From the sequence record OR836606.1: DNA of 64,000 nt; one strand, written 5' to 3'. Below, one piece after another: positions 28,976-54,847 of this stretch. The notes under the pieces are model-generated. The model ran no database searches and was not told the origin of the DNA. It saw nothing but the letters and a program-made list of their open reading frames with translations. Made by a program: the position numbers and the translations under genes. Every line of letters starts with the position of its first letter. Position 1 is the stretch's first letter.

Positions 28976-31339
28976 TTATATACTACAGCTTTCACATTCA
29001 ACAATACCTTGAGAACTTTCATCATGATCAGGTGAATAAATACGAGTATAATACATAGATTTAATACCTTTACTATAAGCATAGTTACGTAATCTACTAA
29101 TATCACGAGTAGTAGTTTCTTTATCTAAAGAATCTTTTTTCCATTCATAAAGTTCTGGATCAAGTTCATTCATTAAGTAAATATTCATAGAAATACCTTG
29201 ATCTACGTGATATTGAGCTTCTGAATATAAATCAATCATATCTCTCATATCTAATTGGTAAGCATTTTTCTTAAAGTATTCAAAGTTGTCTGGTGTAATA
29301 CCTGGCGCTGGATAGAAAGTAGTGCCTGTTTTACCTTCTACACGTTCTTCAATTAACTCAACAATAGGATGAATTGAAGGCGATACTTCTCTAACATAGC
29401 CAATAGACCCATTAGGAGCTACAGCTAATCTATTCTGATTGTATAAACCATCCATAACAATATTATTTCTTAATTGTTCCCAATCGCTATCAGATGGAAT
29501 AAAAATGTCTTTAAATAATTCTTTAACTTTTTCAGTACGTGGTTGAATATTTTTACCAATATAACGTTTATCAAAATAAGAACCATCAGCATATTCAGTT
29601 TTCTCAAATAAATAGAATGATTCATTTTTCTCTTTAGCAATTTTATTTGATTCAACTAATGTCCAATAATTTAATAACATGAAATAAATATTAGTGAAAT
29701 CTTTAGATTCTTCAGAACCATATTGAATGTGGTTTTCAGCTAAGAAAGTGTGTAATCCCATAGCACCTAAACCAACTGTATGAAATAAATCATTTCCTTT
29801 TTTAATTGTAGGTACAGCTTCGATATTAGATTTTTCAGATACTGAATTTAAACTTCTTAACATAGTTCCTACTGATTTACCAAAATCTTCCGATTTCATT
29901 AAACCGGATACAATAGTTGAAGCTAAGTTACATGAAATATCTGTTCCTGTTTTAACATATTGTTGATTATCATCAACTAATGAAGGATATTGTACCTGCA
30001 AAATTTCTGAACACAAATTACTCATTTTAATTTTACCATGACTGATTGGATTAGCTCTATTAGCTGTATCAATATTAATGATATAAGGATATCCAGATTC
30101 TTGTTGTAATTTACTAATTGTGGTTTCTAAATCACGAGCATACATTTTATCTTTACTAATACGTTTATCATCTACAAAGATATCATAATAAGTATTAAAG
30201 TCAATACTGTCGAAATCCAAATCGTAATATTTTTTAATGTCATATGGGCTAAATGTATATAATGATTTATTTTCTTTAACTAACTGATAATATTTGTCTG
30301 GAACGGTTAAACCTAATGAAATAGTTTTTAATCTCACTTTCTCATCAGCATTTTCTTTCTTAGTATCTAAGAATTTCACTACATCTTTATGGAAAATATT
30401 TAAATAGAGCGCACCTGCACCATTACGTTGCATTTATATTAACTATATGAATTTCATATAGATTAGACTATATCTTATACTTCTAATAAGTATTATTATA
30501 TTTAATCGTTGGACAATCATAAAGATTGATGCTGATTAAGTTTATAAACTTTTCCAGCAATTAATAATATTTATACTGAGCCATTAAAATTAACCCAGTT
30601 GATTTACATATGATAATGTATCTTCAAATACTTTCATAACCGGAACTACTCCTGAAGCGGCACCTTCTACACCTTTAATTGGATCATTATCTGCACGTAG
30701 ATTTGATAAACTGATTCCACAGCCTCCGCCTCTTTTACTTAATTGAGCTACGTTAGTAACAGTTCTATAAATTGAAGCTAGAGAATCTTCCATTGTAACT
30801 AAGAAACAACTTATTAACTCACCAGAACGTTTTCTACCTGAATTGAGAAATGTCGGTGTAGCGGGTTGGAAAGTTCCTGTAATGATTTCTTTAGCGATAT
30901 TCTTAGCTAATTCTTCATCTCCATCAGCTAAATATAAAGCTACAAATAAAATTCTATCTTCATATAGTTCTAATAAAATCTCCCCAGCATCATCTTTCAT
31001 TGCATACTGTTCATAGAATTTTTTAGCCCCCAATAAGCGAGTAAATCTATGCTTATAAGCCATTAATTCTTTCATTAATCCTTTAATGAACTCAAAATCA
31101 TAATTATTGATCATATCGCCATCAATATAATCATTATCAACTAGATAATTAATTTTTTCTTTATATGTTTTAAAGTATCTTACATTCTTATTAACTGAAT
31201 CTAAGAAATATTTTTTAACTGAAGCTAATTCAAATTCTAAATCTAAATTACCGTCTTTTAATTGTGACCCTCTTGAGTTTAATTCGTTATATGAATAATC
31301 TTTAAATTTTTCTGAAGTTAAATCAATTTCTTTTGGCAT
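28976..31339 (-). CDS. nrdE: Class Ib RNR alpha subunit, spliced: join(30593-31339, 28976-30430), 733 aa
   Basis: FQPATPTFLN, SCF, SNLCSEI, CNL, VAPNGS, KSMYYTR, C-terminal CESC; splicing gives YVNQLG|QRNGAG. Confidence 0.92.
30431..30592 (-). ncRNA. Minimal group I intron (162 nt) in nrdE
   Basis: Exon ends in U, intron ends in G; P1 ACUGGGU/GCUCAGU with U.G at the splice site; core AAUUGCUGGAAA, AAUCAGCA, CAACGAUUAAA, AAGAUAUAGUC; removal restores the frame. Confidence 0.9.
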
Positions 31340-31368
31340 TTTATTAAAGTCTCCTTTTATATAGCTTA

Positions 31369-32082
31369 TTAATTTATTTCTTGTATTGCTTTTAAAATTT
31401 CTCTTTTATTATAATTTATCATTTCTTTATCATACTTCATGATAACTTTTTCCAAATTCTTTACAATATCTTCGAAAATTTTTTCTGACTTTGGATATTT
31501 TAAACCAAATCTTGTTGGTTCATAAACTAATATATGTTCGATACTACTTAAAGTGTTAGAAAAAGAGTACCAAAATGATATTTGATCTGAAGATTTCCTA
31601 AAAGATAAAGTTCTTAAATCTTTTATCTTAGATTTTTTAGATATTTTTGTAGGTTTACCATTTGGTTTAAAATAATATGATACGTCTGAAGAGTTTATTT
31701 TCTTATCCTTCAAAAAACCTCCATTTTTATTAATTTCAGAAATTCCTTCTTTTATATAATTCGGAGAATTTTCTATAAAATTAATCATAAGTTTTTTACC
31801 GGATTTCTGAAATTGTTCATGGTCCATTGTATTTAATTTATCTTCTTTTAATTCATTCCATTTATCAATAAATAATTTTAATATATTTTCTTCTATATGA
31901 GAATTGGAGGTTTTTATAGAAAATGAATTATTTTTTATATTTCCATTCTTTTTATAATCTTCATTTACTTTTTGATAATATTTTAATATACCCTTACTGA
32001 TATTATCATTTTCATTTTCTATTTTTTGACTATTGTTTTTAAATGATTTAACTGAGCTGTAATGAATTATATTTTCTTCCAT
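31369..32082 (-). CDS. Hypothetical protein inserted between nrdI and nrdE
   Basis: AAGGAGA SD; 237-aa ORF. Confidence 0.65.
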   Translation of the reverse strand: MEENIIHYSSVKSFKNNSQKIENENDNISKGILKYYQKVNEDYKKNGNIKNNSFSIKTSNSHIEENILKLFIDKWNELKEDKLNTMDHEQFQKSGKKLMINFIENSPNYIKEGISEINKNGGFLKDKKINSSDVSYYFKPNGKPTKISKKSKIKDLRTLSFRKSSDQISFWYSFSNTLSSIEHILVYEPTRFGLKYPKSEKIFEDIVKNLEKVIMKYDKEMINYNKREILKAIQEIN

Positions 32083-32106
32083 ATTTTAAATTCTCCTTAC
32101 GGTATG

Positions 32107-32511
32107 TTAACTTATAATACTAGAGTTACTTAACATTTCTAATTTTTTATTTAATTCTAAATGCTCATTTTTTATTCCATGAAGCTCAATTCCCATTATT
32201 AATTTTTTATTGAAATCTTTACATAATTTTTTAGGTGTAGTCAAGAATTCATAATTGAGATTTCTATTACCTGAACCAACTATACCTACACAGTTCATTA
32301 AATTATTACCCTTATTAAAGAATTTTTCTATATGATTATATACTGCATGCGGAGTATTATAAGAACCGCAAATAAGAACATATTCTTCATTAATTTCTAT
32401 ATCTTCACAATTATTTTTATTAAGTTCAATAGGTTCGCCGATTATTGATTTATCTAATTTATGTGCAAATATTTTACTATTACCTGTTAATGTAAAATAA
32501 ACTAATCTCAT
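32107..32511 (-). CDS. nrdI: NrdI flavodoxin
   Basis: VYFTLTGNS...F, GIVGSGNRN motifs; within the nrd cluster. Confidence 0.9.
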   Translation of the reverse strand: MRLVYFTLTGNSKIFAHKLDKSIIGEPIELNKNNCEDIEINEEYVLICGSYNTPHAVYNHIEKFFNKGNNLMNCVGIVGSGNRNLNYEFLTTPKKLCKDFNKKLIMGIELHGIKNEHLELNKKLEMLSNSSIIS

Positions 32512-32550
32512 TTAAATCTCTCCAAAATATAAAATTTTTCGTTAAAAAGA

Positions 32551-32581
32551 GATCCATCATAGGTTATCCCTATGATAGATC
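32551..32581 (-). terminator. Intrinsic terminator
   Basis: GATCTATCATAGG / CCTATGATGGATC stem plus TCTTTTT on the minus strand. Confidence 0.6.
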
Positions 32582-32592
32582 AATTATATTTC

Positions 32593-32793
32593 TTAATATC
32601 CTACTTGACGATAATCCCATTTCCAATAAGTTCCATCTGATGAGAATGAATAATTCCAACCTTCAATACTAAAGTTATAGTTGTATTCTCCTTCATGAAC
32701 AGCTTTTGTATTTAATTCATTATCGTTATTTCTAGCTTTCTCAGCTAATTTTTTAAAATCCACTTCTTCTGGACTGTTAAAAATAGTTTGCAT
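32593..32793 (-). CDS. Hypothetical protein
   Basis: AAAGGAG SD; 66 aa. Confidence 0.6.
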   Translation of the reverse strand: MQTIFNSPEEVDFKKLAEKARNNDNELNTKAVHEGEYNYNFSIEGWNYSFSSDGTYWKWDYRQVGY

Positions 32794-32819
32794 AACTAAA
32801 ATCTCCTTTATTATATTAA

Positions 32820-33059
32820 TTAAGCATTAACTGTAGATAAAATTTGATTTAATTTAGCAGGATCATTACCAACGATTACATCTGTTCCAAAATCAATTAC
32901 AGGCAATGATTGATAACCTTTAGATAAAAGTTCTTCTTTAGCACTTTCATCTTCATCAATATTAATTTCAGTATAATCAACACCTTTATTATTTAAAAAC
33001 ATTTTACTGAAACCACATTTAGCGCAGTTATTCTTAGTATAAAATTTAATTTGTTCCAT
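32820..33059 (-). CDS. nrdH: NrdH glutaredoxin-like redoxin
   Basis: YTKNNCAKC CxxC, GYQSLPVI. Confidence 0.9.
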   Translation of the reverse strand: MEQIKFYTKNNCAKCGFSKMFLNNKGVDYTEINIDEDESAKEELLSKGYQSLPVIDFGTDVIVGNDPAKLNQILSTVNA

Positions 33060-33101
33060 CTTTTAATCAAACCTCTTTCTTATAATTTTTAATAATATAT
33101 T

Positions 33102-33848
33102 TTAGTATTTCTTAAGAATACCATTTATTACTTTGATAAAGTCTTCGTTCTGATCTAATTTATTGCCGAATTTTCCAATATAGTCAACATTTTCAGAAAG
33201 AGATTTTATATAGTAAGGATATTTTTCATAATTTTGCGACATGTATGAACCTAATGAACACATAAATTTGTATAATATATTTGATTCTTTAAAACTATCA
33301 TTATCTAAAGCATTTTTTAAATTATCATAAATTCCTTCTAAATCAATGTAGTTATATTCATTATTTTCATTTCCATGTAACTTATTATATCTATAAATTT
33401 TCATATTTAATTTTTCATTTAATTTTTTAAGTTTATTTTCACTAACAGGCAATTTACTAATATTAATATTCTCTACAAGATGTTTAGCTTCTTTACTATC
33501 TTTAATTTGCTGAATAATATTTTCAATATATTTAGTGTCTTTTATCTTTATATTTTTAAGAGGTTTAAGTCTTTCAGGAATATCATCTTCACTATCAAAA
33601 CTTAAATCACCATTGATAAAGTCCAATTTTTCTTGGTATCTATTAACTTTAGCATCTACTGAAATAGTATCATTAAGACTAATACTGTCTTTACCATAAT
33701 ATGAAGCTATTTCTTTATTAATCTTTTCTTTAGTTTCTTCTAATTCTTTCTCAATTTTTTCATTTTCTTTTTCAAATTCCTCATTAGCCCGTTCTATATC
33801 TTGTTCTAATTTTTCTAAATTCAATTCTTTGTTCTTATCTTCAGTCAT
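33102..33848 (-). CDS. Hypothetical protein
   Basis: AAGGAG SD; acidic coiled-coil N-terminus. Confidence 0.7.
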   Translation of the reverse strand: MTEDKNKELNLEKLEQDIERANEEFEKENEKIEKELEETKEKINKEIASYYGKDSISLNDTISVDAKVNRYQEKLDFINGDLSFDSEDDIPERLKPLKNIKIKDTKYIENIIQQIKDSKEAKHLVENINISKLPVSENKLKKLNEKLNMKIYRYNKLHGNENNEYNYIDLEGIYDNLKNALDNDSFKESNILYKFMCSLGSYMSQNYEKYPYYIKSLSENVDYIGKFGNKLDQNEDFIKVINGILKKY

Positions 33849-33872
33849 TTTAGTTTTTCTCCTTATATATTA

Positions 33873-34682: not shown

Positions 34683-34756
34683 TTTTTATATACTATTTTA
34701 CTAAAATATCTAATACAATCTAGTTAGATTTGTTTTATAAAAATTTGCGATAATAA

Positions 34757-34789
34757 ATAGGTAATGACAAATAATATGTCATTACCTAT
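34757..34789 (-). terminator. Terminator after the terminase gene
   Basis: ATAGGTAATGACA / TGTCATTACCTAT 13-bp stem. Confidence 0.7.
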
Positions 34790-34796
34790 AATATAT

Positions 34797-37700
34797 TTAA
34801 TCTAATAGATTCATTATTCTTTTTGATTTCTGATCTGGAGAAGAATTGTTATTCTGTAATAAAGGATTACTAGGGAGATTACCATCAATAATTCCACTAA
34901 TACGTTTCATGGATGCAATATCTTTTCTTCTAGCTTGTCTTTCTTTTTCAATTTCTTCTGCATTATCTCCATCTGCAGATACCATTGAACCGTATTTAAC
35001 TTTAACAAATTTCTTAATGTCTTTCTCATAGTAATAAGCATATAAACAAAATAGATAACTCATAAGTAAATCGTCATGTCCGCCATCAGGGTGATCAATT
35101 CTACCTTTTTTCATTTGAAGGGATTTTATTTGTTGGAATAATGGTTTATTATTAACTAAATAAGGTTTTTCTTCAACAATCATTGATAAAATTTCATTGA
35201 GCATTAGATCTGCTATATAAATTCATGAGTTTAATTTAATTAAAATGAATTTATTCGACTTCGTCATCACTCTGACTTACTTTGCACTTTAAGTTTTTTC
35301 GTTATAAACTACTTCAACAGAAAGCTTTAATCAAAGCAGAGGTTAAAGCTCTTAAGTCATCGCATTTGGACATTTAGAGGAATAAGACCTCATTTAGCCT
35401 GCCCAACAAAACGCTTACCATACAGTTTTAAATTGACAGCAGCGTTATAATCTCTATCCATTTTATGTCCACAATCACAGGAATACCATCTATCTGATAG
35501 TTTCAACTTATCTTCTTTAGTTAGAATTTGGCCACAATTAGAACATAATTGAGTTGATGGAAACCATCTGTCAGCTACAATAATAGTATTACCATTGCTT
35601 TCAGCTTTTTGTTCAAGTAAAGTCCTAAACTGTCTCCAATTGGACTGTGCGATTGATTTGGATAGTTTTCTATTTTTAATCATATTTGAAACCTGTAAAT
35701 CTTCAATAGTTATATATTGATAATTGTTAATCAAGTTAGTAGTAATCTTATGAAGATAATCTTTTTTAATATTATTAATTCTATACCATACTTTTTGTAT
35801 TTTGGTTTTCAATACATTGTATTTATTAGAACCATAAACTTTTTTAGATAATCTTTTTTGGTAGTATTTGATTTTATTATAGAGTGAGATTAGTTTATTA
35901 TTTAATGAATGGTATTTTTTAAATTTACCGAAATCATCATTAATAATAGCTAAATCTTTTACACCTAAATCAATACCTACATGACTATTGTTATGAATTA
36001 ATTTTTTACTGTTATCAACTTTCATTACTATCGAAGCGAAATACCTACCAGCATATTTGGATATAGTTACTTCTTGTATAGAATTATAATCTTTGTTTAA
36101 AGGTTCTTTCATTTTAATTAATGAATTTACACCACGCAATTTAAGTTTATTATTTTTCTCACCTTTAATTTGAATAGCGTAAGGATCTTTCCTATAGAAC
36201 CTTGCTCTTAATTTAGATTTCTTTTTAGATTTAAATTTAGGATATTTACCATATCCTTTCCACATCATATTAAATGCTTTACCTAGATCTTCTGTAGAAG
36301 TTTCAATTATCATGATAATTTGATCTTTCTCCCAATCTTCTTTACATTTTTTAAGTTCATCACGAACTCTACGATGAGTTGGTTTTGGTAAAGATTTATC
36401 AATTTGATAATTATTCCACATATATTTCCATTTATTAAGTGCCTTGTTATAAATATAACGACTATATCCAAAAGCTTGATTAAATATCTCTCGTTGTTCT
36501 TTATTAGGTTTCAATTCGATTTTTATAGATTTGTACATGTGATTTTCACCTCGATTCATATTTCTAAATGATTTAGAATTTATAATTCATTGTTTAATAT
36601 ATCGAGGTAAAAATTATTTTAATTAAATTAAACTCACGAATTCCAGAAATCCCTTTCAGGTTCTGTTAAATAGCAAGACTATATCATGATCCATTAAATC
36701 AATGGACCCCTCGCACTTCGAAAAACTTCTGATGAAGTTAATCTACTCTACTCACTTCACATAGTATTTCAACTATGCTTATTCAGGTTAATCAAACCTG
36801 TGCTTTCGATAGTCGTTGAACGTTTATCCATCATGTGGACACTTCGCTGCTAGACTTCCCATTGTTTACAAACTTTAGCGATCTAGGGTTTTCACCTAGA
36901 CTTGTTTTCAGCATAGTTCATCTTAGAGATTTTTTCTGTCTTTCGACTGCATGTCACGCTATCCATTACTGGCATACGTTGTAGCTCTCTAAGCTTTAGG
37001 GTTTTACAAGCAATTCACGAGGTATTTTTACCACTAATTTCATGAATTAAAATTAGTTTAATTTACTTATATAGTAGCAGAGCGTGAAACATGAATTAAT
37101 AAGAATTTAAGTCTTAATTCACTTAAAATATCTTAAATTAAAACTGTTTCGTTACTCTAGATTTTTTAGTTGTATCAATACCATATCTTCTTACTTGTTT
37201 GGTAACTTTATTAGTGCTATTTCTAGGAATTTCATTAAATACTTGCTTATTAACTTCAACTTGTTTTTCTGCTACTCTATTCTTTAATGAGTAGAAAATA
37301 TTGTCTCCAATACCATCAGTTTGAATCATATCTTCTATCATTACAGTACCTGCATAGTTACGTTCAGGTATTAATACTGCATTAGGTATATAAAGCGTAA
37401 TAAGTTCTTTAATTAATTTTCTAAAAGTAGGTCCATTAATTACATTATTTTGGAAAATCATTACAGGCTCTAATGTACCTGGATCAACTACAGTAAATGC
37501 AGTATTATCTCGACCAAGACCACCAGATATATCAATACCAACAAGCCAGTTCTTTTCATGCATATTATCCATCTTTTTAACCATATAAACATAATAAGTT
37601 TTACCATTTATTTTAAAATCAATAGTATTATATATCTCTTTATTTGCATATAATGATAATTCTGACATTTGTTGTTCATCAAATAAAGAATCATCGTTAC

Positions 37701-39379
37701 TAAACGCCCATTCAAGAAGTATCTCACGTTTAACTGCTTCTAAAGAACCAATTTGACGTTTTTGCTTTTCTAACCAAGCATCATCTTTACCTAATTCTTT
37801 ATATGAATATTCTATATAGATGAATGAATTGCCTGAATTACTTTCCATATACTCTTCTAATTTTTCATTACCCTCTTCTTCAGAATTAATGTAATAATCA
37901 TATATTTTTTCTGTCCATTGTGCTGCATCATTCATTTGCTCAAAGAAGAACTGTCCTTGAGGTACATCCAAAGTACTCATATTTTTTATCCTATATTAAT
38001 TTAATATAGATAAGACTATATCTTAGTATATTATAATACCATTTATTATTTAGTCGTTAAACAAGTATTATCAACTTGATGCTGATTGTCTTAATAAAGA
38101 TTTTCCAGCAATTAAATAAATAAGCCCAGTTTAATTTTAGGCGTTGTTGTAATTAGAAGACCATAAGGTGTGCCATTTTTCTTAGCTATTGCAGATGCTG
38201 TAGAAACTGCCTTTTAATATTAATCTACATGGATTCCATATAGAATAGACTATATCTTAGTATTATATTAATACTATTTATTATTTAGTCGTTGAACACT
38301 ATAAATAGCGATGCTGATCGTCTTAATAAAGATTTTCCAGCAATTAAATAAATAAGCCCGCATTAATTTCAGGCCTCATTGCTTCAAACATTGTTTGGTT
38401 GTGTGGAATGAATGCCCACTCATCCAACCAGACCATAGGTCATTATGTTAACTATATTTAAAAAATATAGATCAGACTATATCATACTCATATAAATAAG
38501 TGAATATATTTAGTCGTTGAACACTATAATTAGTGATGCTGATTAAGATAATAATCTATTCCAGCAATTAATATTCTTTTACTACTGCAACTATCTACAG
38601 TAGAACCACGCTATTTTAGACTATATCTTCAATTTTATAATTGTCTTTTATTTAGTCGTTGAACACATATGTGATGCTGATCAAATTAAATAATTTGTCC
38701 CAGCAATTAAAAAGATTTATAGCAAGCCATGATATTAACCTGCTTTATTTGCACTCTCACTGTTAGTCGGAGGTGAAACTGTTTTAATAGTATTGTTATT
38801 ACTAGCTAATTGAAATTCGTTGATCTTATCTCTATCATTTTTATCTCCAAAATTAGCTAATACATATTCAGGTAAACATTTCTCTTTAAATAAGTTTTTA
38901 AGACGTTTTAAGTTCTCAGTTGTATCTGAATAAGATTTGTGTGTAAATAACATTGTATAGTTACTACCTACTAATAACATTATCCATGAATAATAACATA
39001 CTGCTGAATATGTTTTATAGTGCTGACGTGGAAGCATTATAGCTGTATCTAAATTGTGTAACATACAAAATGTCATCGCCATATTACCTCTATGAAGTTC
39101 ATACATAACCTTACCGCCAGGAACAGGAACTCTTATAACTTCCCTTAAATAAAACCATATATTAATTTTAGCTTCCCTTAATACACGGGTTTTCATTTCA
39201 TCAGAAAGTTCAGGATCCCAAGGATCTACTCCTACAAGATTTTTATCATATAGAGTTAATGGAATCCCATAATTTCTGACGTTGTTCTTCTTAAGATCCC
39301 TAGCCACTCTTAAAAAACTAACATTATTAGTTTTATAATCGTAATAAACTTTTTTCTTTAATTTTGGTTTAATTGTCAT
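34797..39379 (-). CDS. terL: Terminase large subunit in six exons: 38738-39379, 38597-38610, 38371-38440, 38139-38210, 37155-37977, 34797-35209 (677 aa)
   Basis: Walker A LPRQHYKT; splicing gives KAG|RGSTV|PMVWLDEWAF...MRP|AVS...ITTTP|STL...KKSR|DLML; nuclease motifs GIDISGG, ERN, HDDLLM; exon total 2034 nt is divisible by 3. Confidence 0.88.
35210..35400 (-). ncRNA. Putative TnpB omega-RNA scaffold (guide would extend into terminase exon 6)
   Basis: Structured non-coding right end after the tnpB stop (AAGAGCTTTAA/TTAAAGCTTT, TGACTT/AAGTCA); position follows known TnpB biology; 5' boundary approximate. Confidence 0.6.
35390..36538 (-). CDS. tnpB: TnpB RNA-guided nuclease (IS200/IS605/IS607 family), 382 aa
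   Basis: HTH N-terminus IKIELKPNKEQ; RuvC GIDLG, IEDL, DRDYNAA all intact; CSNCG/CDCG zinc finger; GAGGTG SD favours ATG at 36538. Confidence 0.92.
   Translation of the reverse strand: MYKSIKIELKPNKEQREIFNQAFGYSRYIYNKALNKWKYMWNNYQIDKSLPKPTHRRVRDELKKCKEDWEKDQIIMIIETSTEDLGKAFNMMWKGYGKYPKFKSKKKSKLRARFYRKDPYAIQIKGEKNNKLKLRGVNSLIKMKEPLNKDYNSIQEVTISKYAGRYFASIVMKVDNSKKLIHNNSHVGIDLGVKDLAIINDDFGKFKKYHSLNNKLISLYNKIKYYQKRLSKKVYGSNKYNVLKTKIQKVWYRINNIKKDYLHKITTNLINNYQYITIEDLQVSNMIKNRKLSKSIAQSNWRQFRTLLEQKAESNGNTIIVADRWFPSTQLCSNCGQILTKEDKLKLSDRWYSCDCGHKMDRDYNAAVNLKLYGKRFVGQAK
36548..36608 (-). promoter_or_regulatory. Hairpin sequestering the tnpB SD, with an internal late promoter (36583-36594)
   Basis: ACCTCGAT pairs with ATCGAGGT, which contains the SD; AACA ATGAAT TA lies between the arms. 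Confidence 0.65.
37978..38138 (-). ncRNA. Minimal group I intron (161 nt), terminase intron 4
   Basis: After ...ACGCCU, ends AUG; P1 GCCU/GGGC; AAUUGCUGGAAA, AAUCAGCAUCA, UUUAACGACUAAA, AAGAUAUAGUC. Confidence 0.88.
38211..38370 (-). ncRNA. Minimal group I intron (160 nt), terminase intron 3
   Basis: After AGGCCU, ends AAG; P1 AGGCCU/GGGCUU; full core motifs. Confidence 0.9.
38441..38596 (-). ncRNA. Minimal group I intron (156 nt), terminase intron 2
   Basis: P1 CUACUGU/GCAGUAG with terminal U.G; ends AUG; full core motifs. Confidence 0.9.
38611..38737 (-). ncRNA. Minimal group I intron (127 nt), terminase intron 1
   Basis: P1 AGCAGGU/GCUUGCU; P4 UGCUG/CAGCA; P5 CAAAUU/AAUUUG; P7 GACUA/UAGUC; P8 CAAUU/AAUUG; ends UAG only 8 nt after P7. 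Confidence 0.88.
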
Positions 39380-39398
39380 ATTTATTTCAACTCACTTT

Positions 39399-40562: not shown

Positions 40563-40589
40563 AATTAAATAATAATCTCCCTTCTTTAT

Positions 40590-41696
40590 TTATATATCAG
40601 GTGTTAACCTATCAGACATTTTTATTAATTTCTGAATGTCACTAATAGTTTTCTTTATTTCTTCTTTAGTTTTAGCATCATTATTACTATTAGATAATTC
40701 TTTTTGTAATATTTTCACATTACTCTCTATTATATCTGTTTCCCAATCTTTATAATCTCTTATAAAAAGGTTGAAAGGATATAATAATTTATTTTTAATT
40801 TTATTAATTTTACTGTTGTTATATATTGGTGGTTTACTACCTTCTAATTTATCTATCTCTCTAACTATTATTGTAGTTTTAGTTAATTCTCTAGCATAAC
40901 CATATAAATTAGGAAGATAATCTGCAGTTCTTTCAGTTAAATTATAATCTTTATTATTTTTATTTTTCTTTATATTTCTGTTTAAAAAAACAGTTGTAAC
41001 CATTCCACTTCCGATACCTATAGGTGCATTAACAATACTTAAAAAGATAAAGAATAAAGTCATAGCAGATATCATAGGTATAGCAAATTTTTTATTTCTT
41101 TTTTCATCTTCTTCAATATCTTTTGAGTAAGAAAACATTTGAGGTGGATTATCTTTATATTTCAATTCAAATTTAGGAGTTTTTCCTTTATTAAGTACAT
41201 TTAATTCTAAAGGTAAAATTAAATTATGTCCTATTTCATGAAGTAAGACTGAAGTTAATAAACTTCCATCAAATAGATTGTCTATTATTTTATTTTTACC
41301 TTTTAATAAAATACAGTATCTTATAAAGTTTAACTCCATATCAACTATTATTTTAGTCGGTTTAGCATAATATATCCCATTTTTTTCTTCAGAGACTATT
41401 TTTAATAATCCCAATGCTATATCTTTTGCTTGTTTTTCATTCCATCTTGTTTGACCTATGAAATTACATGAATAATATTTAGAATCATTCAATTCTAAGA
41501 AATTAAATCTCAAATCAGTGTTAAATAATTCATTACATATTTTCTCTATTTCTTTTTCTTTATTTTTAAAATTAAAGTCAATAAATTCTTCTTTATTAAG
41601 ATCATATGAATTTATTAATTCATTAAATACATTATCAATTAATTTTAGCTTATTCTTATTTTTACTATTAATAAACATATCTTCGTTAAGAAGCAA
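40590..41696 (-). CDS. HExxH zinc-metallopeptidase-like protein with hydrophobic segments
   Basis: VLLHEIGH, downstream TERTAD, hydrophobic stretch; tandem paralogue. Confidence 0.6.
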   Translation of the reverse strand: MLLNEDMFINSKNKNKLKLIDNVFNELINSYDLNKEEFIDFNFKNKEKEIEKICNELFNTDLRFNFLELNDSKYYSCNFIGQTRWNEKQAKDIALGLLKIVSEEKNGIYYAKPTKIIVDMELNFIRYCILLKGKNKIIDNLFDGSLLTSVLLHEIGHNLILPLELNVLNKGKTPKFELKYKDNPPQMFSYSKDIEEDEKRNKKFAIPMISAMTLFFIFLSIVNAPIGIGSGMVTTVFLNRNIKKNKNNKDYNLTERTADYLPNLYGYARELTKTTIIVREIDKLEGSKPPIYNNSKINKIKNKLLYPFNLFIRDYKDWETDIIESNVKILQKELSNSNNDAKTKEEIKKTISDIQKLIKMSDRLTPDI

Positions 41697-41729
41697 GTTC
41701 TCTCACACCTTTTTCTTTTTATAAAATAA

Positions 41730-41759
41730 ACCCATACATTCACTAAGGAATGTATGGGT
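41730..41759 (-). terminator. Terminator after the major capsid gene
   Basis: ACCCATACATTC / GAATGTATGGGT 12-bp stem plus T-run. Confidence 0.8.
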
Positions 41760-41789
41760 AATATAAATAACAAAAATAAAGTATTACTC

Positions 41790-43394
41790 TTATCGAGCGT
41801 ATACTGAACCGTTGTTGTTTTTGATTGTAATACGTCCAATGATCGGAACGAATGATTCAACTGTATATCTACGAGTCATCATCATGTTAGGAACATTAGG
41901 GTTACGAGTATTTAAGTAACCTCCACCATTTACAACATTGAATGTGTAAGGGTAGAACATAAATGTTTTATAGTTATCTTGTTGAGGGACAGCAATAATA
42001 GTCAATTCACCTTGACGAACTAAGTCAGAACCGATAATACGGTAGTTAGCAGTACCTGAAGCAGCACCTAATGAATAGTTAATTTTGATTCCGTTAGAAT
42101 ACGCATCAGCGTTACGGTCTCCACCATTGAAAGTCCAAGAAACGTTAGGAATTAAACGAACGTCTAATGGGTTACCAACGATAACGAATTGAACATCATA
42201 TAATTTATAATCATTTTTCATTGATTGAGTAGTGTGGTCGATTACTTCACGTAAACCTTCTAACCAATCTTTAGGATGTGCGCTGTAATCACTATGTGGG
42301 AATACATCGAAGCTGAAATGATATTTAGCATCAGTTTCTTTATATTCACGATCTAAGAATTCAATAATGTCTAAGTCAACTTTTTGACTAGATAATTGAG
42401 ACATAGTTTCTGATAAACGAGCAACGCCATCGATATCATAAGTAGCTTTCATATCTTGAATTACTTCAAGAGGTACTGTAGCTTCGATGTGTTGAGCTGT
42501 ATCAATAACAACATCTTTACGAGTTAATCCAAGTTCAACGTTTGTAGCTGAAGTATGTTGTTCTGAAGCTACATAACCTTTGACTTTAACATCAGTTAAT
42601 TTACCTGAAGCAGAAGTCAAAGTAAGTTCACCTGAAGAAACATCCACTTTACCTAAGATAGTGTCAGTTTCAACTTCACCATCACCATTTGTAGGATATT
42701 TAATTTGTCCTACTAATGTGTCATTGTCTTGTAATTTAACTACGTTAGAACCTAATTCAACGAATCCAGCTTCAGAAGTACGTTCATCATATGAATCGCT
42801 CCATTTAGCTTCAACGATTTTGAATTTACGATCTAAACGGTCAATACCTTTACGAACTTCTTTACCTTCTTTTAATCCAGTAAATAAATCGTAGTCAGTA
42901 ATTTTTCCACCGTCAACTTGGATATCTTCTTTAATTTGAACTAATCCAACTAGAGTTTCAGGAGTGTTGTTAATTGATTCTGGTAAAGCATGTCGGTTAC
43001 CATCTGCATCTACAACATATGGAGTTAAGATTGGAACTGTAAAGTTTGGTTTATTAGCAACTTGAGTTGGTAGAGCTTCAGTTAAAGCTAAACGAGCCCA
43101 TAGTTTAACTAAAATAGGCATAGAAAGTGAAGCGTAAGGTTGGATAGGACCCATTGAAGATTCCATTAAGATTTCTTCACGAGTATTGTCTAACATTCCA
43201 GCTAAAGCTTCTCCTTCAGCAGCGTCAAAACCTTCTAATAATTGATCTTTATAACTTTCAAATACTGCATCATCAGTAGCAATAGCAGCGAAATCTCCGC
43301 CGATAGTACTAAGATTATATGATTCATTAATAGAATTTTCAATATCTTCTAAACGAATCGAAAATTCATCTTTAATTCTGTTTGGGTTTAACAT
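41790..43394 (-). CDS. Major capsid protein (534 aa precursor)
   Basis: Strong SD, own late promoter and terminator; HK97-fold-like order (MGPIQP...; EVIQDMKATYDID; VIVGNP; RY at C-terminus); near protease and terminase. Confidence 0.8.
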   Translation of the reverse strand: MLNPNRIKDEFSIRLEDIENSINESYNLSTIGGDFAAIATDDAVFESYKDQLLEGFDAAEGEALAGMLDNTREEILMESSMGPIQPYASLSMPILVKLWARLALTEALPTQVANKPNFTVPILTPYVVDADGNRHALPESINNTPETLVGLVQIKEDIQVDGGKITDYDLFTGLKEGKEVRKGIDRLDRKFKIVEAKWSDSYDERTSEAGFVELGSNVVKLQDNDTLVGQIKYPTNGDGEVETDTILGKVDVSSGELTLTSASGKLTDVKVKGYVASEQHTSATNVELGLTRKDVVIDTAQHIEATVPLEVIQDMKATYDIDGVARLSETMSQLSSQKVDLDIIEFLDREYKETDAKYHFSFDVFPHSDYSAHPKDWLEGLREVIDHTTQSMKNDYKLYDVQFVIVGNPLDVRLIPNVSWTFNGGDRNADAYSNGIKINYSLGAASGTANYRIIGSDLVRQGELTIIAVPQQDNYKTFMFYPYTFNVVNGGGYLNTRNPNVPNMMMTRRYTVESFVPIIGRITIKNNNGSVYAR

Positions 43395-43457
43395 AAATTT
43401 TTTCTGCTCCTTTTCTTAAATATATTAGCGTGTAGTTTATATTTATTAATTTTATTA

Positions 43458-43469
43458 TATAAATTTGTT
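43458..43469 (-). promoter_or_regulatory. AR9-type late promoter of the capsid gene
   Basis: AACA AATTTA TA on the minus strand. Confidence 0.6.
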
Positions 43470-43581
43470 TATAAAAAATAATCATTATTTGTAATGAAAT
43501 ATTTCTTTTTATATGTTAATGTTATTAATGTTATTAATTTTATAAATATTAACAAAAAAGAATAAAATCTGAAATATAAAA

Positions 43582-44190
43582 CTATTTGCTTTTTTTGTCT
43601 TTATTCAATTTATTATATTCTTTTAAATAAATATTGAAGATTTCATTATAAGTATTTTCAAACTTCTTATAAAGTTTTTTACATTTATCAGCATCAATAT
43701 TATTTATAAATTTATTGTTAAATAAATTAATACTGTCAATTAAACTGTCTAAGTTATTTGAAGTTTGTATTGTAATTTCATTCATTTTTTCTTTTTCATT
43801 TTTATCAAATAATTTCATATTTTTTTCATTTATAATATCTTTAAATTTTAATGAAACAGATATCAAATCATTTAGTTTATTAAATATTTGTAATTTTAGA
43901 TATTTATCAGAATTAGTTTCTTTAGGTTCATTATTTTCTTCTTCAGATTGATCATCTTCATTATTGTTATCTTGACTATCTTCTTCGGTTTCTGTATTTT
44001 CTTCTGAAGATTCTTCATTATCACTATTGGCATCTTCAGAACTTGTATCATCTGTATTAGTATCTGGAGAATCATTATTAGTTTCATCATCTTCAGCTTC
44101 ATTAAGAATATTATTACCATTTAATAATTTTTTAATTGATTCAGATAAAAGATCTCTATTATTAATAGTCATATGATGACCCACTATCAT
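43582..44190 (-). CDS. Hypothetical head/scaffold protein with an acidic linker
   Basis: ORF with ILNEAEDDE followed by a D/E/N-rich tract; located in the head module. Confidence 0.55.
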   Translation of the reverse strand: MIVGHHMTINNRDLLSESIKKLLNGNNILNEAEDDETNNDSPDTNTDDTSSEDANSDNEESSEENTETEEDSQDNNNEDDQSEEENNEPKETNSDKYLKLQIFNKLNDLISVSLKFKDIINEKNMKLFDKNEKEKMNEITIQTSNNLDSLIDSINLFNNKFINNIDADKCKKLYKKFENTYNEIFNIYLKEYNKLNKDKKSK

Positions 44191-45181
44191 TTACATCTCC
44201 ACGAGAAATCGCATTCTTAGTTTTTTCAATAGATTTCTTTTGGAAATTAGCTTTCTTAAGTTGAACTTCTAAATCTGATTTTAATATTCTTAATTCTTTT
44301 CTTTTTTCTTCATCATCAGTTGAATCAATTCTGTTTTCTAAAGTTTGAATTCTTTCTTCTAATACAATGATAAGTCTATTAAGTTCATTACCTTTAGTTG
44401 CATTATAAACAATTACAGTCAATAAACCTATTAAAGCCGTTTTAGCTTTACCAATACCTGCTGAACTAATTTTTAAACCAATACAGAATAAAATTCCAGT
44501 TAATAGAGCTCTTACGAATCTAATACGATTAGCTTTAGCTAATTGTTTATCATTCATATTTTTAGAAGAAGCTGTTGCTTTTTTAACAGAGCTAATTAAT
44601 TTATTTAAATTTTTTTCAGCAACTTTGGGGTCTTTAGAAGTTTCAAAACTACTATCAAGACCATCAAGATAATCTTCATCATCGTCATCATCATAAGCTT
44701 CATTAAGATAATTCATATTACCCTCCATTAAGAAGTTAATAACAGCTTTTCTTTCTAATTTAGAATCAGCAGGGCTTTCAGCTAGTGCTACAGTCAATTG
44801 TTTAAAATTAAATTCTGTATTAATATTAGAACTAAAATCTTCTTTATATAAACTATCTATGTATCCGTTATTTGGGACACGTTTATTAATATAAAGAGTG
44901 TTATATTTATCTTTTAAAAATTCTATTTTATGAAGAACCATATTAACTGCCATTTCAGACTGTTCATTTTCAATTTCAAATCTTTCTAACGAATCTTTTA
45001 AAGTAACAAGATATTTAACAGATTTTCTAACTTGATCGCTTGTAAAAGAATCCACATCTGCATACTTTTCAATGTCAATTAATTTATCATATAAATCAAC
45101 AGGAAAAGAATCATTATCTGTTTGTTCTATGAAATATTTTAAATCACTTTCTACTTCATTGAAATTCTTCAAGTATTTCAC
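44162..45181 (-). CDS. Hypothetical head-associated protein
   Basis: 339 aa; YLNEAYDDDD, hydrophobic segment, C-terminal coiled coil; late promoter upstream. Confidence 0.6.
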   Translation of the reverse strand: MKYLKNFNEVESDLKYFIEQTDNDSFPVDLYDKLIDIEKYADVDSFTSDQVRKSVKYLVTLKDSLERFEIENEQSEMAVNMVLHKIEFLKDKYNTLYINKRVPNNGYIDSLYKEDFSSNINTEFNFKQLTVALAESPADSKLERKAVINFLMEGNMNYLNEAYDDDDDEDYLDGLDSSFETSKDPKVAEKNLNKLISSVKKATASSKNMNDKQLAKANRIRFVRALLTGILFCIGLKISSAGIGKAKTALIGLLTVIVYNATKGNELNRLIIVLEERIQTLENRIDSTDDEEKRKELRILKSDLEVQLKKANFQKKSIEKTKNAISRGDVNDSGSSYDY

Positions 45182-45209
45182 ATCCTATTCATATTTTCAT
45201 TAAGGTTAA

Positions 45210-45247
45210 TATTCTATTGTTAAAATTGCTTATCAAACATTTAAATA
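45210..45247. promoter_or_regulatory. Back-to-back late promoters (45210-45221 minus; 45236-45247 plus)
   Basis: AACA ATAGAA TA (minus) and AACA TTTAAA TA (plus) in a short divergent intergenic gap. Confidence 0.6.
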
Positions 45248-45283
45248 TTCTAAATTTAATATATGAAAGGAAGTTAAATAAAT

Positions 45284-46645
45284 ATGTCTAAAGATATAAA
45301 AGCTTATCTTATTAATGAATCTAACACAACTTCTCAACCAGAAGTAGTTCAAGATAATAATAAATCGGTTAGATTCATTGCTGAGTTACAAGAAGCTGAT
45401 AGACAAAACCGTAATGGTCGTGTTTATCGTAAAGATGTTATTCAAAGTGGTTTAGATAGTCCAGTAATACAAGAAAAATTAGCAAGAAAAACTTTTTATG
45501 GTGAGTTTTAGGTTAAATGGCTCACATTAAATTATATTAATTGCTGGAAAAGATTATTATCTTAATCAGCATCAACTTAATACAAGTTGTTCAACGACTA
45601 AATATATAGCCTAGATGATATAGTCTAACCTTTATTAAAATGATAAAGAATAATAATTTGCAGGACATCCTTTAAGTGATGAACCTAAACGACAAATGTA
45701 TATTGATCAACGTAATATTTCTCATATCGTTACTAGAACATGGTGGAATGGTAATAAATTAATGGCAGAAGTAGAAACGGCACAAACAGCAGCTGGTAAA
45801 GATATGAAAGGTTTAATCGGACAAAAGTCTGACGTATCTTTCTCAATGCGTGGTTTCAGTAAAATTAATAGAACACCTTCTGGCGAAGTTGAAGTTACTA
45901 AACCTTTAAGATTAATCTGTTAAATTGTAGCAGCTTTATATAGAAATATATATTGAAAAAGAATATTAATTGCTAAGAAGTTTAATTAAGCCAATTAGCA
46001 TCAACTTAATACAAGTTGTTCAACGACTAAATATATTTACTCTTAATAAGAGTATGATATAGTCTAATCTTAATAGTAAGATCTATTAAGTTAATATAAT
46101 GTACGATAAAATAAACCTTGTCGCTTCTTAAAGCAATTTAAGAATGATAAAACTATTAATTGCTAAAATCTTTTATTAAAGTAATTAGCATCAACTTAAT
46201 AAAAGTTGTTCAAAGACTAAATATAGTTTATCCTTTTATAGGATAATGATATAGTCTGATCTATATTATACTAATATAGATAACATAAATGTGGGTAGTA
46301 ATTCCATCTCATCAAGATTCTTACATTCAAAATATTATTTCAGAAGGACACAATAATTATAATCCTAATGATTTACAAATGGTAAATGAATCAATTGATA
46401 TGTTCACTAATGGTAAAATTACTGAATTTTCTCCTAGAGAAGTTTTAACTTATATTAAAGAAAATTCAGATAATGTAAAATACATTGCTGAAGATATGGG
46501 GTTTGCTGGAGTTGATGAATCTAATATCAGTTATGATAAAGGATCTCAATTAGCTTCAATTAGAGAAAGTAATAAAACTATTAAAGTTTTCTTAGAAGAA
46601 TCTGTTCTTAATGGACTTGATGATTTCTATAGAAACTTTAAATAA
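45284..46645 (+). CDS. Prohead core protease (T4 gp21-like) in four exons: 45284-45506, 45661-45920, 46102-46107, 46292-46645 (280 aa)
   Basis: NRNGRVY; splicing gives GE-S-GHP; ISHIV; SFSMRG; IC|YD|WVVIPSH; exon total 843 nt is divisible by 3. Confidence 0.9.
45507..45660 (+). ncRNA. Minimal group I intron (154 nt), protease intron 1
   Basis: P1 GUGAGU/GCUCAC; AAUUGCUGGAAA, AAUCAGCAUCA, GUUCAACGACUAAA, GAUAUAGUC; ends UUG. Confidence 0.9.
45921..46101 (+). ncRNA. Minimal group I intron (181 nt), protease intron 2
   Basis: P1 CUGU/GCAG; compensatory P4 UGCUAA/UUAGCA; R and S elements; ends AUG. Confidence 0.88.
46108..46291 (+). ncRNA. Minimal group I intron (184 nt), protease intron 3
   Basis: P1 CGAU/GUCG; P4 UGCUAA/UUAGCA; GUUCAAAGACUAAA; GAUAUAGUC; ends AUG. 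Confidence 0.88.
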
Positions 46646-53924: not shown

Positions 53925-54004
53925 TAAAATTATAAACATTATTTAAATATATATTATATAAATGAGATTAATAATAGTTAAATAATCTTAAATAATTTTT
54001 ATAA

Positions 54005-54808: not shown

Positions 54809-54815
54809 TAAAATT

Positions 54816-54847
54816 GAGGTAACTATCATTAATTTGATAGTTACCTC
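54816..54847. terminator. Bidirectional terminator
   Basis: GAGGTAACTATCA / TGATAGTTACCTC 13-bp stem. Confidence 0.75.

Follow-up and report, generated by a model that had tools for sequence, protein, structure and literature searches.

Miniature group I introns that interrupt three essential genes in the Staphylococcus jumbo phage LY01, and their probable kinship with IStron ribozymes

Results

The DNA considered here, referred to as the window, forms the final 64 kb of the genome of Staphylococcus jumbo phage LY01 (record OR836606.1). In the window, three essential genes, nrdE, terL and the prohead protease gene, are interrupted by eight inserts of 127-184 nt that lack an open reading frame (ORF). 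All eight are preceded by T and terminated by G, and together they make up one repeat family with a mean column identity of 65% (alignment A1). The pattern AATTGCTRR..TYAGCATC occurs eight times when 0.01 matches are expected, and GATATAGTC occurs 11 times when 0.72 are expected. A covariance model (CM) of the family, a check proposed in an earlier note on this DNA, returns exactly the eight inserts at 99.5-123.6 bits, with the next match in the window at 16.5 bits, and it also finds matches in other phages.

In the sister phage SA1 the three genes are uninterrupted, and the alignment of its DNA to the LY01 exons breaks exactly at the insert boundaries. With the inserts removed, the exons sum to 2202 nt for nrdE, 2034 nt for terL and 843 nt for the protease gene, the lengths that these genes have, uninterrupted, in SA1 and DC4, and the protein can be read across the joins as ANKAG|RGSTV|PMVW..MRP|AVST..TTTP|STLDV, NQLG|QRNG, FYGE-S-GHP and RLIC|YD|WVVI. 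The insert coordinates of the earlier note are all exact when judged by the empty sites of SA1 and DC4, the exon sums and the family model. Its claim that removal restores the reading frame also holds, with the addition that the terL sum requires the removal of a fifth, larger insert. The boundaries leave two micro-exons, one of 14 nt (38597-38610) and the other of 6 nt (46102-46107).

The simplest case is nrdE, which encodes the alpha chain of a class Ib ribonucleotide reductase (RNR) on the minus strand at 28976-31339, with exons at 30593-31339 and 28976-30430. Its single 162-nt intron (30431-30592, minus strand; 111.2 bits with the family CM) corresponds to an empty site in SA1, and the Pfam domain Ribonuc_red_lgC stops at profile position 74 in exon 1 and restarts at position 75 in exon 2. 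The intron has P1 and P3-P9 and no P2, and its P1 is the 7-bp helix ACUGGGU/GCUCAGU.

The terL gene (34797-39379, minus strand), identified by tblastn matches to annotated terminase large subunits, consists of six exons (38738-39379, 38597-38610, 38371-38440, 38139-38210, 37155-37977 and 34797-35209). Intron 1 (38611-38737, 127 nt, minus strand; 99.5 bits) is the smallest mini intron in the LY01 genome and retains P1 and P3-P8, without P2 or P9. In MarsHill the same intron is found with an A-U to G-U change in P6. The 14-nt micro-exon that follows codes for RGST-V and corresponds to SA1 nt 643-656; as read by hand, it supplies both the P10 partner of intron 1 (CGUGG/UCAUG) and the P1 partner of intron 2 (CUACUGU/GCAGUAG). 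Intron 2 (38441-38596, 156 nt, minus strand; 117.9 bits) has a P1 of 7 bp, and intron 3 (38211-38370, 160 nt, minus strand; 101.5 bits) one of 6 bp. Intron 4 (37978-38138, 161 nt, minus strand; 106.3 bits) comes directly after the LLITTTP motif, at a site that in AH12 is occupied by a different family member. Intron 5 (35210-37154, 1945 nt, minus strand) is an IStron, in which a larger group I ribozyme is combined with a TnpB ORF (35390-36559) carrying the Pfam domains OrfB_IS605, Cas12f1-like_TNB and HTH. Its ribozyme scores 26.1 bits with the Rfam model RF00028, and its site is empty in MarsHill, SA1 and DC4. With G as the last base of the 5' exon and CAG closing the element, its junctions fit the group B / CsISt1 rule (PMC4227781).

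The prohead core scaffold/protease gene (45284-46645, plus strand) has exons at 45284-45506, 45661-45920, 46102-46107 and 46292-46645. Intron 1 (45507-45660, 154 nt, plus strand; 113.9 bits) is without P2 and P8. Intron 2 (45921-46101, 181 nt, plus strand; 119.3 bits) has a P2 with a GAAA loop and the P4 helix GCUAA/UUAGC, and intron 3 (46108-46291, 184 nt, plus strand; 123.6 bits) has an 8-bp P2 with a GCAA loop. Between introns 2 and 3 lies the 6-nt micro-exon TACGAT (46102-46107, plus strand), which codes for Tyr-Asp where SA1 reads RLICYDWVV. When the pairings are read by hand, these six nucleotides provide the P10 partner of intron 2 (UACGA/UUGUA) as well as the P1 partner of intron 3 (CGAU/GUCG).

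The group I fold and its limits

The P, Q, R and S elements of the group I core are found in order by pattern in all eight inserts, and the RF00028 alignment shows them as AAUUGCUGG, AUCAGCAUC, GUUCAACGACUAAA and GAAGAUAUAGUCU. The joiners J4/5 and J8/7 and the catalytic core elements are fully conserved. Each insert has its own P1, which counts 4-7 bp from the splice-site U.G pair (4 bp only in three cases). The features earlier ascribed to the inserts, a U before, a G at the end and a P1 with U.G at the splice site, are present in 8/8. The reported covariation of P4 is likewise real, with GC to AU and GU to AU changes in two members. Over seven helices and 97 distinct sequences, in an alignment that was itself fitted to the model, 95.2% of the cells are paired, as compared with 64.1% after shuffling and 32-42% when the partners are slid, and the covariation score is 0.64 versus 0.14. 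Changes on both sides are seen in P3, P5, P6, P8 and P9, and P7 is nearly invariant and paired in every cell. For the long-range helix P3, pairing in 34/34 copies at four positions is evident already in the raw MAFFT alignment. Unconstrained minimum free energy (MFE) folds recover P1, P4/P5, P6, P7/P8 and P9, with z values from -2.3 to -5.9, the lowest for protease intron 3. The G+C content of the intron RNAs is 19-28%, their helices are short and their MFE is -25 to -42 kcal/mol.

Scans of the whole window with RF00028 give no match to any of the eight introns. In small windows, the cmsearch advocated in the earlier note gives full-length matches for four, terL intron 1 (42.1 bits) and protease introns 1, 2 and 3 (34.8, 33.3 and 27.8 bits); the gathering threshold of 50 bits is reached by none of the eight, and the terL introns of Bacillus phage AR9, used as a control, score 70-93 bits. 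For terL intron 2, the small-window search gives partial matches only (17.1 and 11.8 bits). In terL intron 1, P1, P3, P4, P5, P6, P7 and P8 are mapped and P2 is deleted; P1, P3, P4, P5, P6, R, P3', P8 and S are placed on the consensus, and the core compares with that of Rfam as AAUUGCGGg / AAuCCGCAGC / GUUCAaAGACUAAA / AAGAUAUAGUCu.

The full set of helices from P1 to P9 is not kept throughout, as P2 is missing in 6/8 introns. Furthermore, terL intron 1 has no P9 because just 8 nt follow P7, and protease intron 1 has no P8 because the spacing between R and S is just 13 nt. P8 and P9 normally belong to the conserved group I scaffold, and for these two introns unaided catalysis is therefore uncertain. 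Genome-wide in LY01, P8 is missing in 8/34 copies, and a GNRA-capped P2 occurs in at least 10 of the 26 copies with P8, as against none of the eight without it.

The family across phages and its link to TnpB

The earlier count of eight is correct for the window, but the LY01 genome contains 34 mini introns in all, and terL has its fifth intron besides. Matching places number 34 in LY01, 29 in AH12, 29 in Machias, 20 in PB50, 11 in Madawaska and 8 in MarsHill, and there are none in the four relatives S6, PALS_2, DC4 and SA1. LY01 and its five intron-carrying relatives are plaque-forming isolates. In IMG/VR, 108 loci match the core pattern, and the family CM gives 355 hits in jumbo-phage contigs, with E-values down to 3e-15.

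LY01 has five TnpB elements of IStron type, of which three have a larger ribozyme and two a mini ribozyme; no ribozyme was found adjoining the sixth TnpB. The two mini-family members with TnpB (LY01 record 80914-82557 and 134552-136201) reach 121.5 and 119.4 bits against the family CM, inside the range of the ORF-less copies. Both are exact insertions after GGAT with ACAG at their ends, and their TnpB ORFs follow the ribozyme. A 296-nt ORF-less copy has the 3' end AACAAGACAG in common with the TnpB-carrying copies. The absence of a homing ORF, as claimed earlier, thus applies to the eight inserts, in which neither an IS part (TnpA/TnpB) nor any ORF was found, but not to the family as a whole. 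From the two TnpB carriers follows that the family is IStron-related and not an orphan, and the ORF-less copies therefore look like stripped-down IStron ribozymes. Sequence similarity makes this the best reading.

Discussion

The eight inserts are very probably real group I introns, reduced from a phage/IStron-type (IA2-like) ribozyme and removed by RNA splicing. For LY01 and its relatives we infer splicing from the fact that the host genes are essential and an isolated phage is viable. The last 4-7 exon bases pair with an internal guide sequence to form P1, which has its U.G pair at the splice site. P3, P4-P5-P6 and P7 make up the core, as a rule joined by P8 and P9 and at times by a GNRA-capped P2. 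If the standard group I mechanism applies, a free guanosine bound by the core would attack the 5' splice site, after which the terminal G would take the same pocket, P10 would align the 3' exon and the exons would be ligated, restoring NrdE, TerL and the prohead protease. Stripped-down IStron ribozymes would have spread through essential phage genes, probably by recombination between co-infecting phages, where TnpB-guided cuts at empty sites, or reverse splicing, may have helped.

How much of this the RNA can do alone is a separate matter. One alternative, to which we give a serious chance a little short of even, is that the introns are derived from group I but too reduced to act by themselves, so that splicing in vivo needs a phage or host protein, such as a maturase-like factor or an RNA chaperone, or unusual ions. 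The low G+C content of 19-28%, MFE values of just -25 to -42 kcal/mol and the loss of P2, P8 or P9 in individual members all point this way. So does the confinement of the GNRA-capped P2 to copies that keep P8 (at least 10/26 versus 0/8), since copies without P2 or P8 would then miss that stabilising contact. Protein cofactors are, moreover, required by many group I introns that are larger than these (PMC2813881). Against a helper speaks the full conservation of the core elements, J4/5 and J8/7. Nor was a candidate found: those LY01-specific ORFs, from part of the LY01-specific segments, that were scanned with Pfam are TnpB or have no domain, and the sole annotation of RNA-chaperone type in LY01, a 'cold shock protein', is by Pfam a staphylococcal-nuclease homologue.

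A bolder version of the splicing account, which we hold only tentatively, is that no natural self-splicing group I ribozymes smaller than these have yet been seen: they would reach down to 127 nt and include working members that lack P2 and P9 or P2 and P8. They would be non-autonomous, MITE-like offspring of TnpB IStrons at 30 or more essential-gene sites, with exons down to 6 nt serving as P10 and then as P1. If so, the 6-nt exon of the protease gene must act as P10 of one intron and as P1 of the next.

It is very improbable that the inserts stay in the RNA and that the broken genes work as fragments, each translated on its own, or are relics that the phage can do without. The GenBank records do list the pieces as separate 'hypothetical proteins'. 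But exons as short as 6 and 14 nt are impossible as separate proteins, several inserts begin with an in-frame stop, and the RNR barrel would be severed, as would the Walker-B-like region and the TTT region of TerL. In addition, LY01 and its five insert-carrying relatives form plaques, and their exons are conserved to the same degree as in the intron-free SA1 and DC4. Equally hard to credit are miniature transposons at the DNA level (MITE-like remnants of IS200/605 that would be tolerated, without RNA splicing, because the DNA is excised or translation bypasses them), for in spite of the kinship with TnpB-carrying elements and the many copies at similar short target sites (GGT, GAT, CCT, TGT), what is conserved and covaries is a group I core with a P3/P7 pseudoknot rather than transposon-end hairpins, all eight retain the splice-site U.G and the terminal G, the inserts are stable in assembled genomes and 127-184 nt far exceeds known bypassed gaps.

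Comparison with known systems

The usual model of minimal self-splicing is the Azoarcus pre-tRNA-Ile intron, of subgroup IC3 and about 205 nt. All eight LY01 introns are shorter than this, as the earlier note had said, and judged by size they may rank with the smallest group I ribozymes in nature. They resemble the Azoarcus intron in being ORF-less, with a bare P1-P9 core and few peripheral elements, and in some members the GNRA loop on P2 hints at an L2-P8 contact of the Azoarcus kind. In minimal introns of the Azoarcus type, the tetraloop-receptor contacts L2-P8 and L9-P5 keep the bare core together; in the LY01 introns, neither a receptor motif nor an L9 tetraloop was found. The Azoarcus intron differs in being G+C-rich and very stable, with P2, P8 and P9, while the LY01 introns have 19-28% G+C, are 20-80 nt shorter, belong to another subgroup and sit in protein-coding genes.

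A second comparison is with the IA2-type terL introns of AR9, which have the same P/Q/R/S core in the same host gene and belong to the phage lineage of LY01. Three of the four match the LY01 family model at 53-63 bits and two share core motifs, and for the four LY01 introns with full-length matches the RF00028 alignment runs from one end to the other. The AR9 introns are larger, however (247-281 nt and 70-93 bits with RF00028, as against 127-184 nt and 28-42 bits), and the LY01 introns are without their R-S insert of P7.1/P7.2 type, of about 130 nt, and variously without P2, P8 or P9. Introns in this phage clade have been inferred from protein alignments by Korn et al., who also cite experimentally determined sequences of mature AR9 mRNA (10.1101/2020.12.14.422802).

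For gut Jug phages, ORF-less group I introns of like architecture are published: PMC12880540 gives 2513 group I introns with a mean of about 206 nt, and metatranscriptomes that support the splicing of 37 out of 76. Jumbo-phage contigs of 200-400 kb in IMG/VR, by their size putatively Jug phages, show the same order P1-P2-P3-P4/5-P6-P7-P8-P9 with the same core words, and their introns are, as in LY01, ORF-less and densely clustered, splitting terL and other essential genes. The hosts are different, Bacteroides for the Jug phages and Staphylococcus for LY01, and so is the size. The Jug introns average about 206 nt and normally keep P2 and P9; in LY01 the median is about 161 nt, and the shortest intron has 127 nt. 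In the passages of PMC12880540 consulted, no link to TnpB is mentioned for Jug phages.

In an IStron, a group I intron is joined to an element of the IS200/605 or IS607 type. Derivatives without an ORF and ribozymes of the IA2 type have been described for IStrons, and the surveys cover mainly bacteria and two C. botulinum phages (PMC4227781, PMC13565253). IStrons carry an IS part and the eight LY01 inserts do not. In the literature we found no report of an IStron in a Staphylococcus phage, of an IStron ribozyme part as small (about 190 nt), or of introns pared down to 127-160 nt that have lost P2, P8 or P9. The suggestion that the inserts form an undescribed compact class is nevertheless too strong, as introns are known in the clade and those of the Jug phages are published; what stands of it is that a reduction to 127-160 nt is still unusual. 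We rate the LY01 introns as a miniaturised form of a known kind of group I intron.

Boundaries of the Inserts and Restoration of the Reading Frames

The window agrees at 100% identity with the final 64 kb of OR836606.1, the 258,897-bp record of Staphylococcus jumbo phage LY01, and a window position is obtained when 194,897 is subtracted from the record position; positions are those of the window unless marked as record. LY01 is related to the AR9/PBS1-like Staphylococcus jumbo phages MarsHill, Madawaska, Machias, S6, PALS_2, DC4, SA1, PB50 and AH12, and no paper on LY01 itself was found in a literature search of incomplete coverage.

The earlier note had described eight ORF-less inserts, one in nrdE, four in terL and three in the prohead protease gene, as members of one repeat family, each preceded by T and ending in G. 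This description is correct and statistically solid. The mean column identity of the eight in their alignment (A1) is 65%, all eight have the T and the G, and a covariance model built from the family, run on the window, singles out precisely these eight, which score 99.5-123.6 bits, the next best match having 16.5 bits. The core pattern AATTGCTRR..TYAGCATC occurs eight times in the window versus 0.01 times expected. In the sister phage SA1 the three genes are uninterrupted, with lengths of 2034 nt for terL, 2202 nt for nrdE and 843 nt for the protease, and the lengths in DC4 are identical. The SA1-LY01 DNA alignment blocks break precisely at the insert coordinates first proposed, which are thus exact, and the joined LY01 exons read locally as the SA1 protein, so that the claim of a restored frame stands as well. 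The nrdE exons sum to 747 + 1455 = 2202 nt and the protease exons to 223 + 260 + 6 + 354 = 843 nt, while within the Pfam RNR barrel domain nrdE exon 1 ends at profile position 74 and exon 2 restarts at position 75. Three inserts open with UAA in frame, and in a fourth the reading frame meets a stop within 5 nt.

The boundaries of the eight introns were set by the SA1 alignment together with the family alignment. Micro-exons defeat a brute-force search for junctions with flanks of 14 nt. A spliced-alignment program resolved most sites, but it mis-split the two protease introns that flank the exon of 6 nt, and at record 40788-41148 it joined two introns into one.

Architecture of the Intron RNA and Its Detection with Rfam

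When all members are read segment by segment, P1 is formed by the exon end and the internal guide sequence, P2 is optional, and then follow the 5' strand of P3, AAU, P4 (UGCUGG), the P5 hairpin, P4' (UCAGCA) and the P6 hairpin. GUUCAAC-GACUA provides R and the 5' strand of P7 and is followed by AAU, the 3' strand of P3 and the P8 hairpin, after which AAGAUA-UAGUC provides S and the 3' strand of P7; the RNA closes with the P9 hairpin and about 12 nt of tail, the last base of which is G. Such a topology, with its P3/P7 pseudoknot, is that of group I, and it supports the assignment of the inserts to the group I introns. Counted from the U.G pair at the splice site, P1 has 7, 7, 7, 6, 4, 6, 4 and 4 bp in the eight introns, and the comparison of cognate with non-cognate P1 pairings is weak, since related introns have target sites in common. 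Unconstrained minimum free energy folds yield P1, P4/P5, P6, P7 enclosing P8, and P9, with z-scores of -2.3 to -5.9 versus dinucleotide shuffles.

The Rfam group I model RF00028 recognizes the introns when the target is short. Applied to a few hundred bases, it aligns terL intron 1 (38611-38737, 127 nt) over its whole length with a score of 42.1 bits (E = 6e-10), matching P1, P3, P4, P5, P6, R, P3', P8 and S with P2 deleted, and it gives the three protease introns 34.8, 33.3 and 27.8 bits; as a positive control, the four terL introns of Bacillus phage AR9 score 70-93 bits. The curated cut-off of 50 bits lies above every score of these LY01 introns, the model passes its filters only in windows of 0.2-0.8 kb, and Rfam scans of the whole window gave no matches, either at the gathering threshold or at E<=10. 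The mini introns are therefore unannotated because their scores fall below the cut-off and their signal is absent from larger scans. A further consequence is that, in at least six deposited genomes, the annotation wrongly breaks TerL, NrdE, RNA polymerase subunits and other genes into fragments.

Covariation of the Paired Segments

The 34 LY01 members were gathered by pattern and aligned with MAFFT (alignment A2). In this raw alignment the P3 strands, about 70 nt apart, pair at four positions in all 34, by AU, UA and CG pairs. With a P3-P9 model, 105 matches (97 distinct) were then aligned, which come from LY01, MarsHill, AH12 and jumbo-phage contigs of the gut. In the 40 pairs of the seven helices, standard pairs fill 95.2% of cells, versus 64.1% in shuffled alignments and 32-42% with partners slid 1-3 columns away, and the covariation score is 0.64 versus 0.14 (shuffled) and 0.07-0.10 (slid); since this alignment was fitted to the model, these figures are somewhat inflated. 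Both the raw P3 pairing and the slid control speak for a genuine signal. Changes on both sides are seen at every pair of P3, P5, P6, P8 and P9, while P4 is half invariant and P7 nearly invariant.

Degree of Reduction

All eight introns are smaller than the Azoarcus intron. The lengths in LY01, taken from the spliced alignment on DC4 with the T...G rule, are 127, 140, 142, 146, 153 and so on up to 188 nt, with a median near 161 nt. The G+C content is 19-28%. Six of the eight window introns lack P2. In terL intron 1 only 8 nt lie beyond P7, and P9 must therefore be absent; in protease intron 1 only 13 nt separate R from S, from which the absence of P8 follows. P8 is missing in eight of the 34 LY01 copies, where its usual replacement is the segment AUAUUACUAAGAA. 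A GNRA-capped P2 occurs in at least 10 of the 26 copies with P8 versus none of the eight without it, which hints at a possible L2-P8 contact in the fuller members. Full-model matches of 97-100 nt, from P3 to the 3' tail, occur in IMG/VR jumbo-phage loci (L009 11679-11775, L069 5246-5342, L064 2409-2507 and L087 5892-5991), so that extreme reduction is not confined to Staphylococcus phages.

In the incompletely covered literature, no paper was found that describes a group I intron within 127-160 nt or one without P8, and there is a real chance that the family includes the smallest natural group I ribozymes. The suggestion of an undescribed class is only partly borne out: the extreme reduction is unusual, and the introns are best placed as a miniaturised form of known group I introns. 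If they splice, they redefine the minimum of the group I scaffold in nature, without P2, in some cases without P8 or P9, and at about 20-25% G+C, and work on ribozyme folding and engineering would gain a new minimal model from them, for instance for compact splicing or circularisation modules.

Micro-Exons

The intron boundaries imply two striking exons, one of 14 nt in terL (38597-38610) and one of 6 nt, UACGAU, in the protease gene (46102-46107). Read from the sequence, UACGAU pairs with UUGUA, directly 5' of the guide GCAG of protease intron 2, as a canonical P10, and with the CGAU at its end it forms P1 with GUCG of protease intron 3. The 14-nt exon likewise forms P10 with terL intron 1 (CGUGG/UCAUG) and P1 with terL intron 2 (CUACUGU/GCAGUAG). 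The same exon bases cannot serve in P10 and P1 at once, and neighbouring introns therefore probably splice successively; on paper, both orders would be feasible. Very short exons separate many of the clustered introns elsewhere in LY01, for instance exons of about 9-16 nt at record 40954-40962, 131441-131456 and 176622-176630.

Probable Splicing and Possible Routes of Spread

The introns are very probably removed by standard guanosine-initiated splicing in two steps, which would restore NrdE, TerL and the protease, three essential proteins. An active ribozyme is favoured by the catalytic core and its joiners, which are fully conserved and also speak against a need for a chaperone or cofactor. 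The very low G+C content, the short helices and the missing scaffold helices argue that such a need may exist. The LY01-specific ORFs scanned are TnpB genes or have no domain match, with no helper candidate among them, and dependence on a helper is conceivable and somewhat the less probable case. The annotated "cold shock protein" (record 59368-59739; locus L117 9868-10239) is dismissed as a helper, being a member of the staphylococcal nuclease family (PF00565) with no cold-shock domain. The idea that AU-rich ribozymes explain the plaquing of MarsHill-type phages only at 30 C is not supported either, as intron-free DC4 was handled at 30 C too, while the growth temperature of SA1, also intron-free, was 37 C.

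The introns may have spread by recombination in co-infections or by reverse splicing, with short P1 targets (GGU, GAU, CCU and UGU) as the guide, and the ORF-carrying copies possibly by TnpB-guided cutting at empty sites.

Distribution among Phages and Wider Relatives

The 34 LY01 copies, on which pattern, covariance model and blastn agree, are often grouped, with two to four per gene. Among 50,697 phage records six match, LY01 at 34 places, AH12 and Machias at 29 each, PB50 at 20, Madawaska at 11 and MarsHill at 8, and in five of the six the best-matching place lacks annotation. No family copy is found in S6, PALS_2, SA1 or DC4; the last is about 92-95% identical to LY01, and its sequence is continuous at the sites where the alignment can be resolved. 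MarsHill has terL introns 1-3 and lacks intron 4, and AH12 carries another member of the family in the position of intron 4. Presence and absence among such close relatives imply recent gain or precise loss, and LY01, with about 40 introns versus none in close relatives, is a natural system for the spread of introns without homing genes.

Other differences from DC4 are a 384-nt insert at record 176820-177203, within a mini-intron cluster and without a family-core match, and the non-intron segments 11181-12197, 31378-32084 and 61371-64000, which have no DC4 counterpart; a 237-aa ORF at 31369-32082, adjoining nrdE, falls in such a segment. In Listeria phage LPJP1, where the annotation divides terL among three hypothetical proteins, a weak family-model match (32.5 bits; L003 4639-4823) lies between the terL pieces, and the gene is probably also split there.

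Introns in MarsHill, Madawaska and Machias were inferred by Korn et al. from protein alignments, with neither a reconstructed TerL nor a description of the intron RNAs (10.1101/2020.12.14.422802). For LY01, the junctions reported here solve the TerL reconstruction. The DC4 paper reports no introns by Rfam (PMC10638138), in agreement with the present analysis.

In IMG/VR the core pattern is found at 108 loci, mostly on contigs of 200-400 kb, with 355 model matches, and the elements have the helix order of LY01 with P2 and P9 present. Judged by their length alone, these contigs look like Jug phages, the gut jumbo phages for which 2513 group I introns were reported, averaging about 206 nt and splitting terL and nrdD, with metatranscriptome reads that support splicing of 37 of 76 introns (PMC12880540). 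The strict pattern has no match in 185,579 genomes of bacteria and archaea. A looser R..S pattern finds 39 loci (L126-L164), mostly in candidate-phyla-radiation (CPR) and other MAGs and also in Bacillus, Sporosarcina and Vibrio; they score 28-58 bits with the family model, and their P3-to-P9 spans go down to about 100-125 nt, many of them in CPR. Very small group I cores may be more widespread than annotation shows.

A Fifth terL Intron and Its Relation to IStrons

The eight inserts listed earlier are all real, but the terL exons listed with them sum to less than 2034 nt because a fifth insert was missed. Comparison with MarsHill, SA1 and DC4 places the last 138 TerL codons at 34797-35209, separated from the rest of the gene by terL intron 5 (35210-37154, minus strand, 1945 nt), which is absent from MarsHill. 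When it is counted, the six terL exons give 642 + 14 + 70 + 72 + 823 + 413 = 2034 nt. The element is an IStron, a group I intron joined to an IS200/605- or IS607-type element, and carries a TnpB ORF (35390-36559, 389 aa) with OrfB_IS605, Cas12f1-like TNB and HTH_OrfB domains. Its group-I-like core is larger and scores 26.1 bits with RF00028 in a small-window scan.

LY01 has six TnpB genes, and no TnpA is seen alongside them. Three belong to large-ribozyme IStrons, namely that of terL, one at record 182832-184743, ending in CAG, and one at record 53610-55607, with a 5' exon ending in G and an element ending in CTG. For a fourth, annotated "mobile element protein" (record 62152-63497), no adjoining ribozyme was found. 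The remaining two, of about 400 aa, are joined to ribozymes of the mini family, at record 80914-82557 (L117 ~31414-33057) and record 134552-136201 (L118 ~35552-37201), which score 121.5 and 119.4 bits with the family model. These elements, of 1644 and 1650 nt, are exact insertions relative to DC4, preceded by GGAU and terminated by ACAG, and at both sites the exon reads CGGAT in LY01 versus CTGAT in DC4, the LY01 form strengthening P1.

The 3' end AACAAGACAG is common to both elements and to a 296-nt ORF-less member (record 59891-60186); the 296-nt copy looks like an intermediate in the loss of the transposon part. The terminal word of ordinary ORF-less copies resembles that of the TnpB-carrying ones (UUAACAUAAAUG vs UUAACAAGACAG). 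On sequence grounds, the simplest reading would be that the ORF-less introns are stripped IStron derivatives, and the LY01 system ties introns without homing genes to TnpB transposons. ORF-less IStrons and IA2 ribozymes are on record in the literature (PMC4227781, PMC13565253), and no account of an IStron from a Staphylococcus phage was found there. According to Tourasse et al., group B IStrons splice after G, and CsISt1, which has ORF B only, is inserted after AG and ends in CAG (PMC4227781). The terL IStron resembles these known elements, in that G closes its 5' exon and CAG closes the element.
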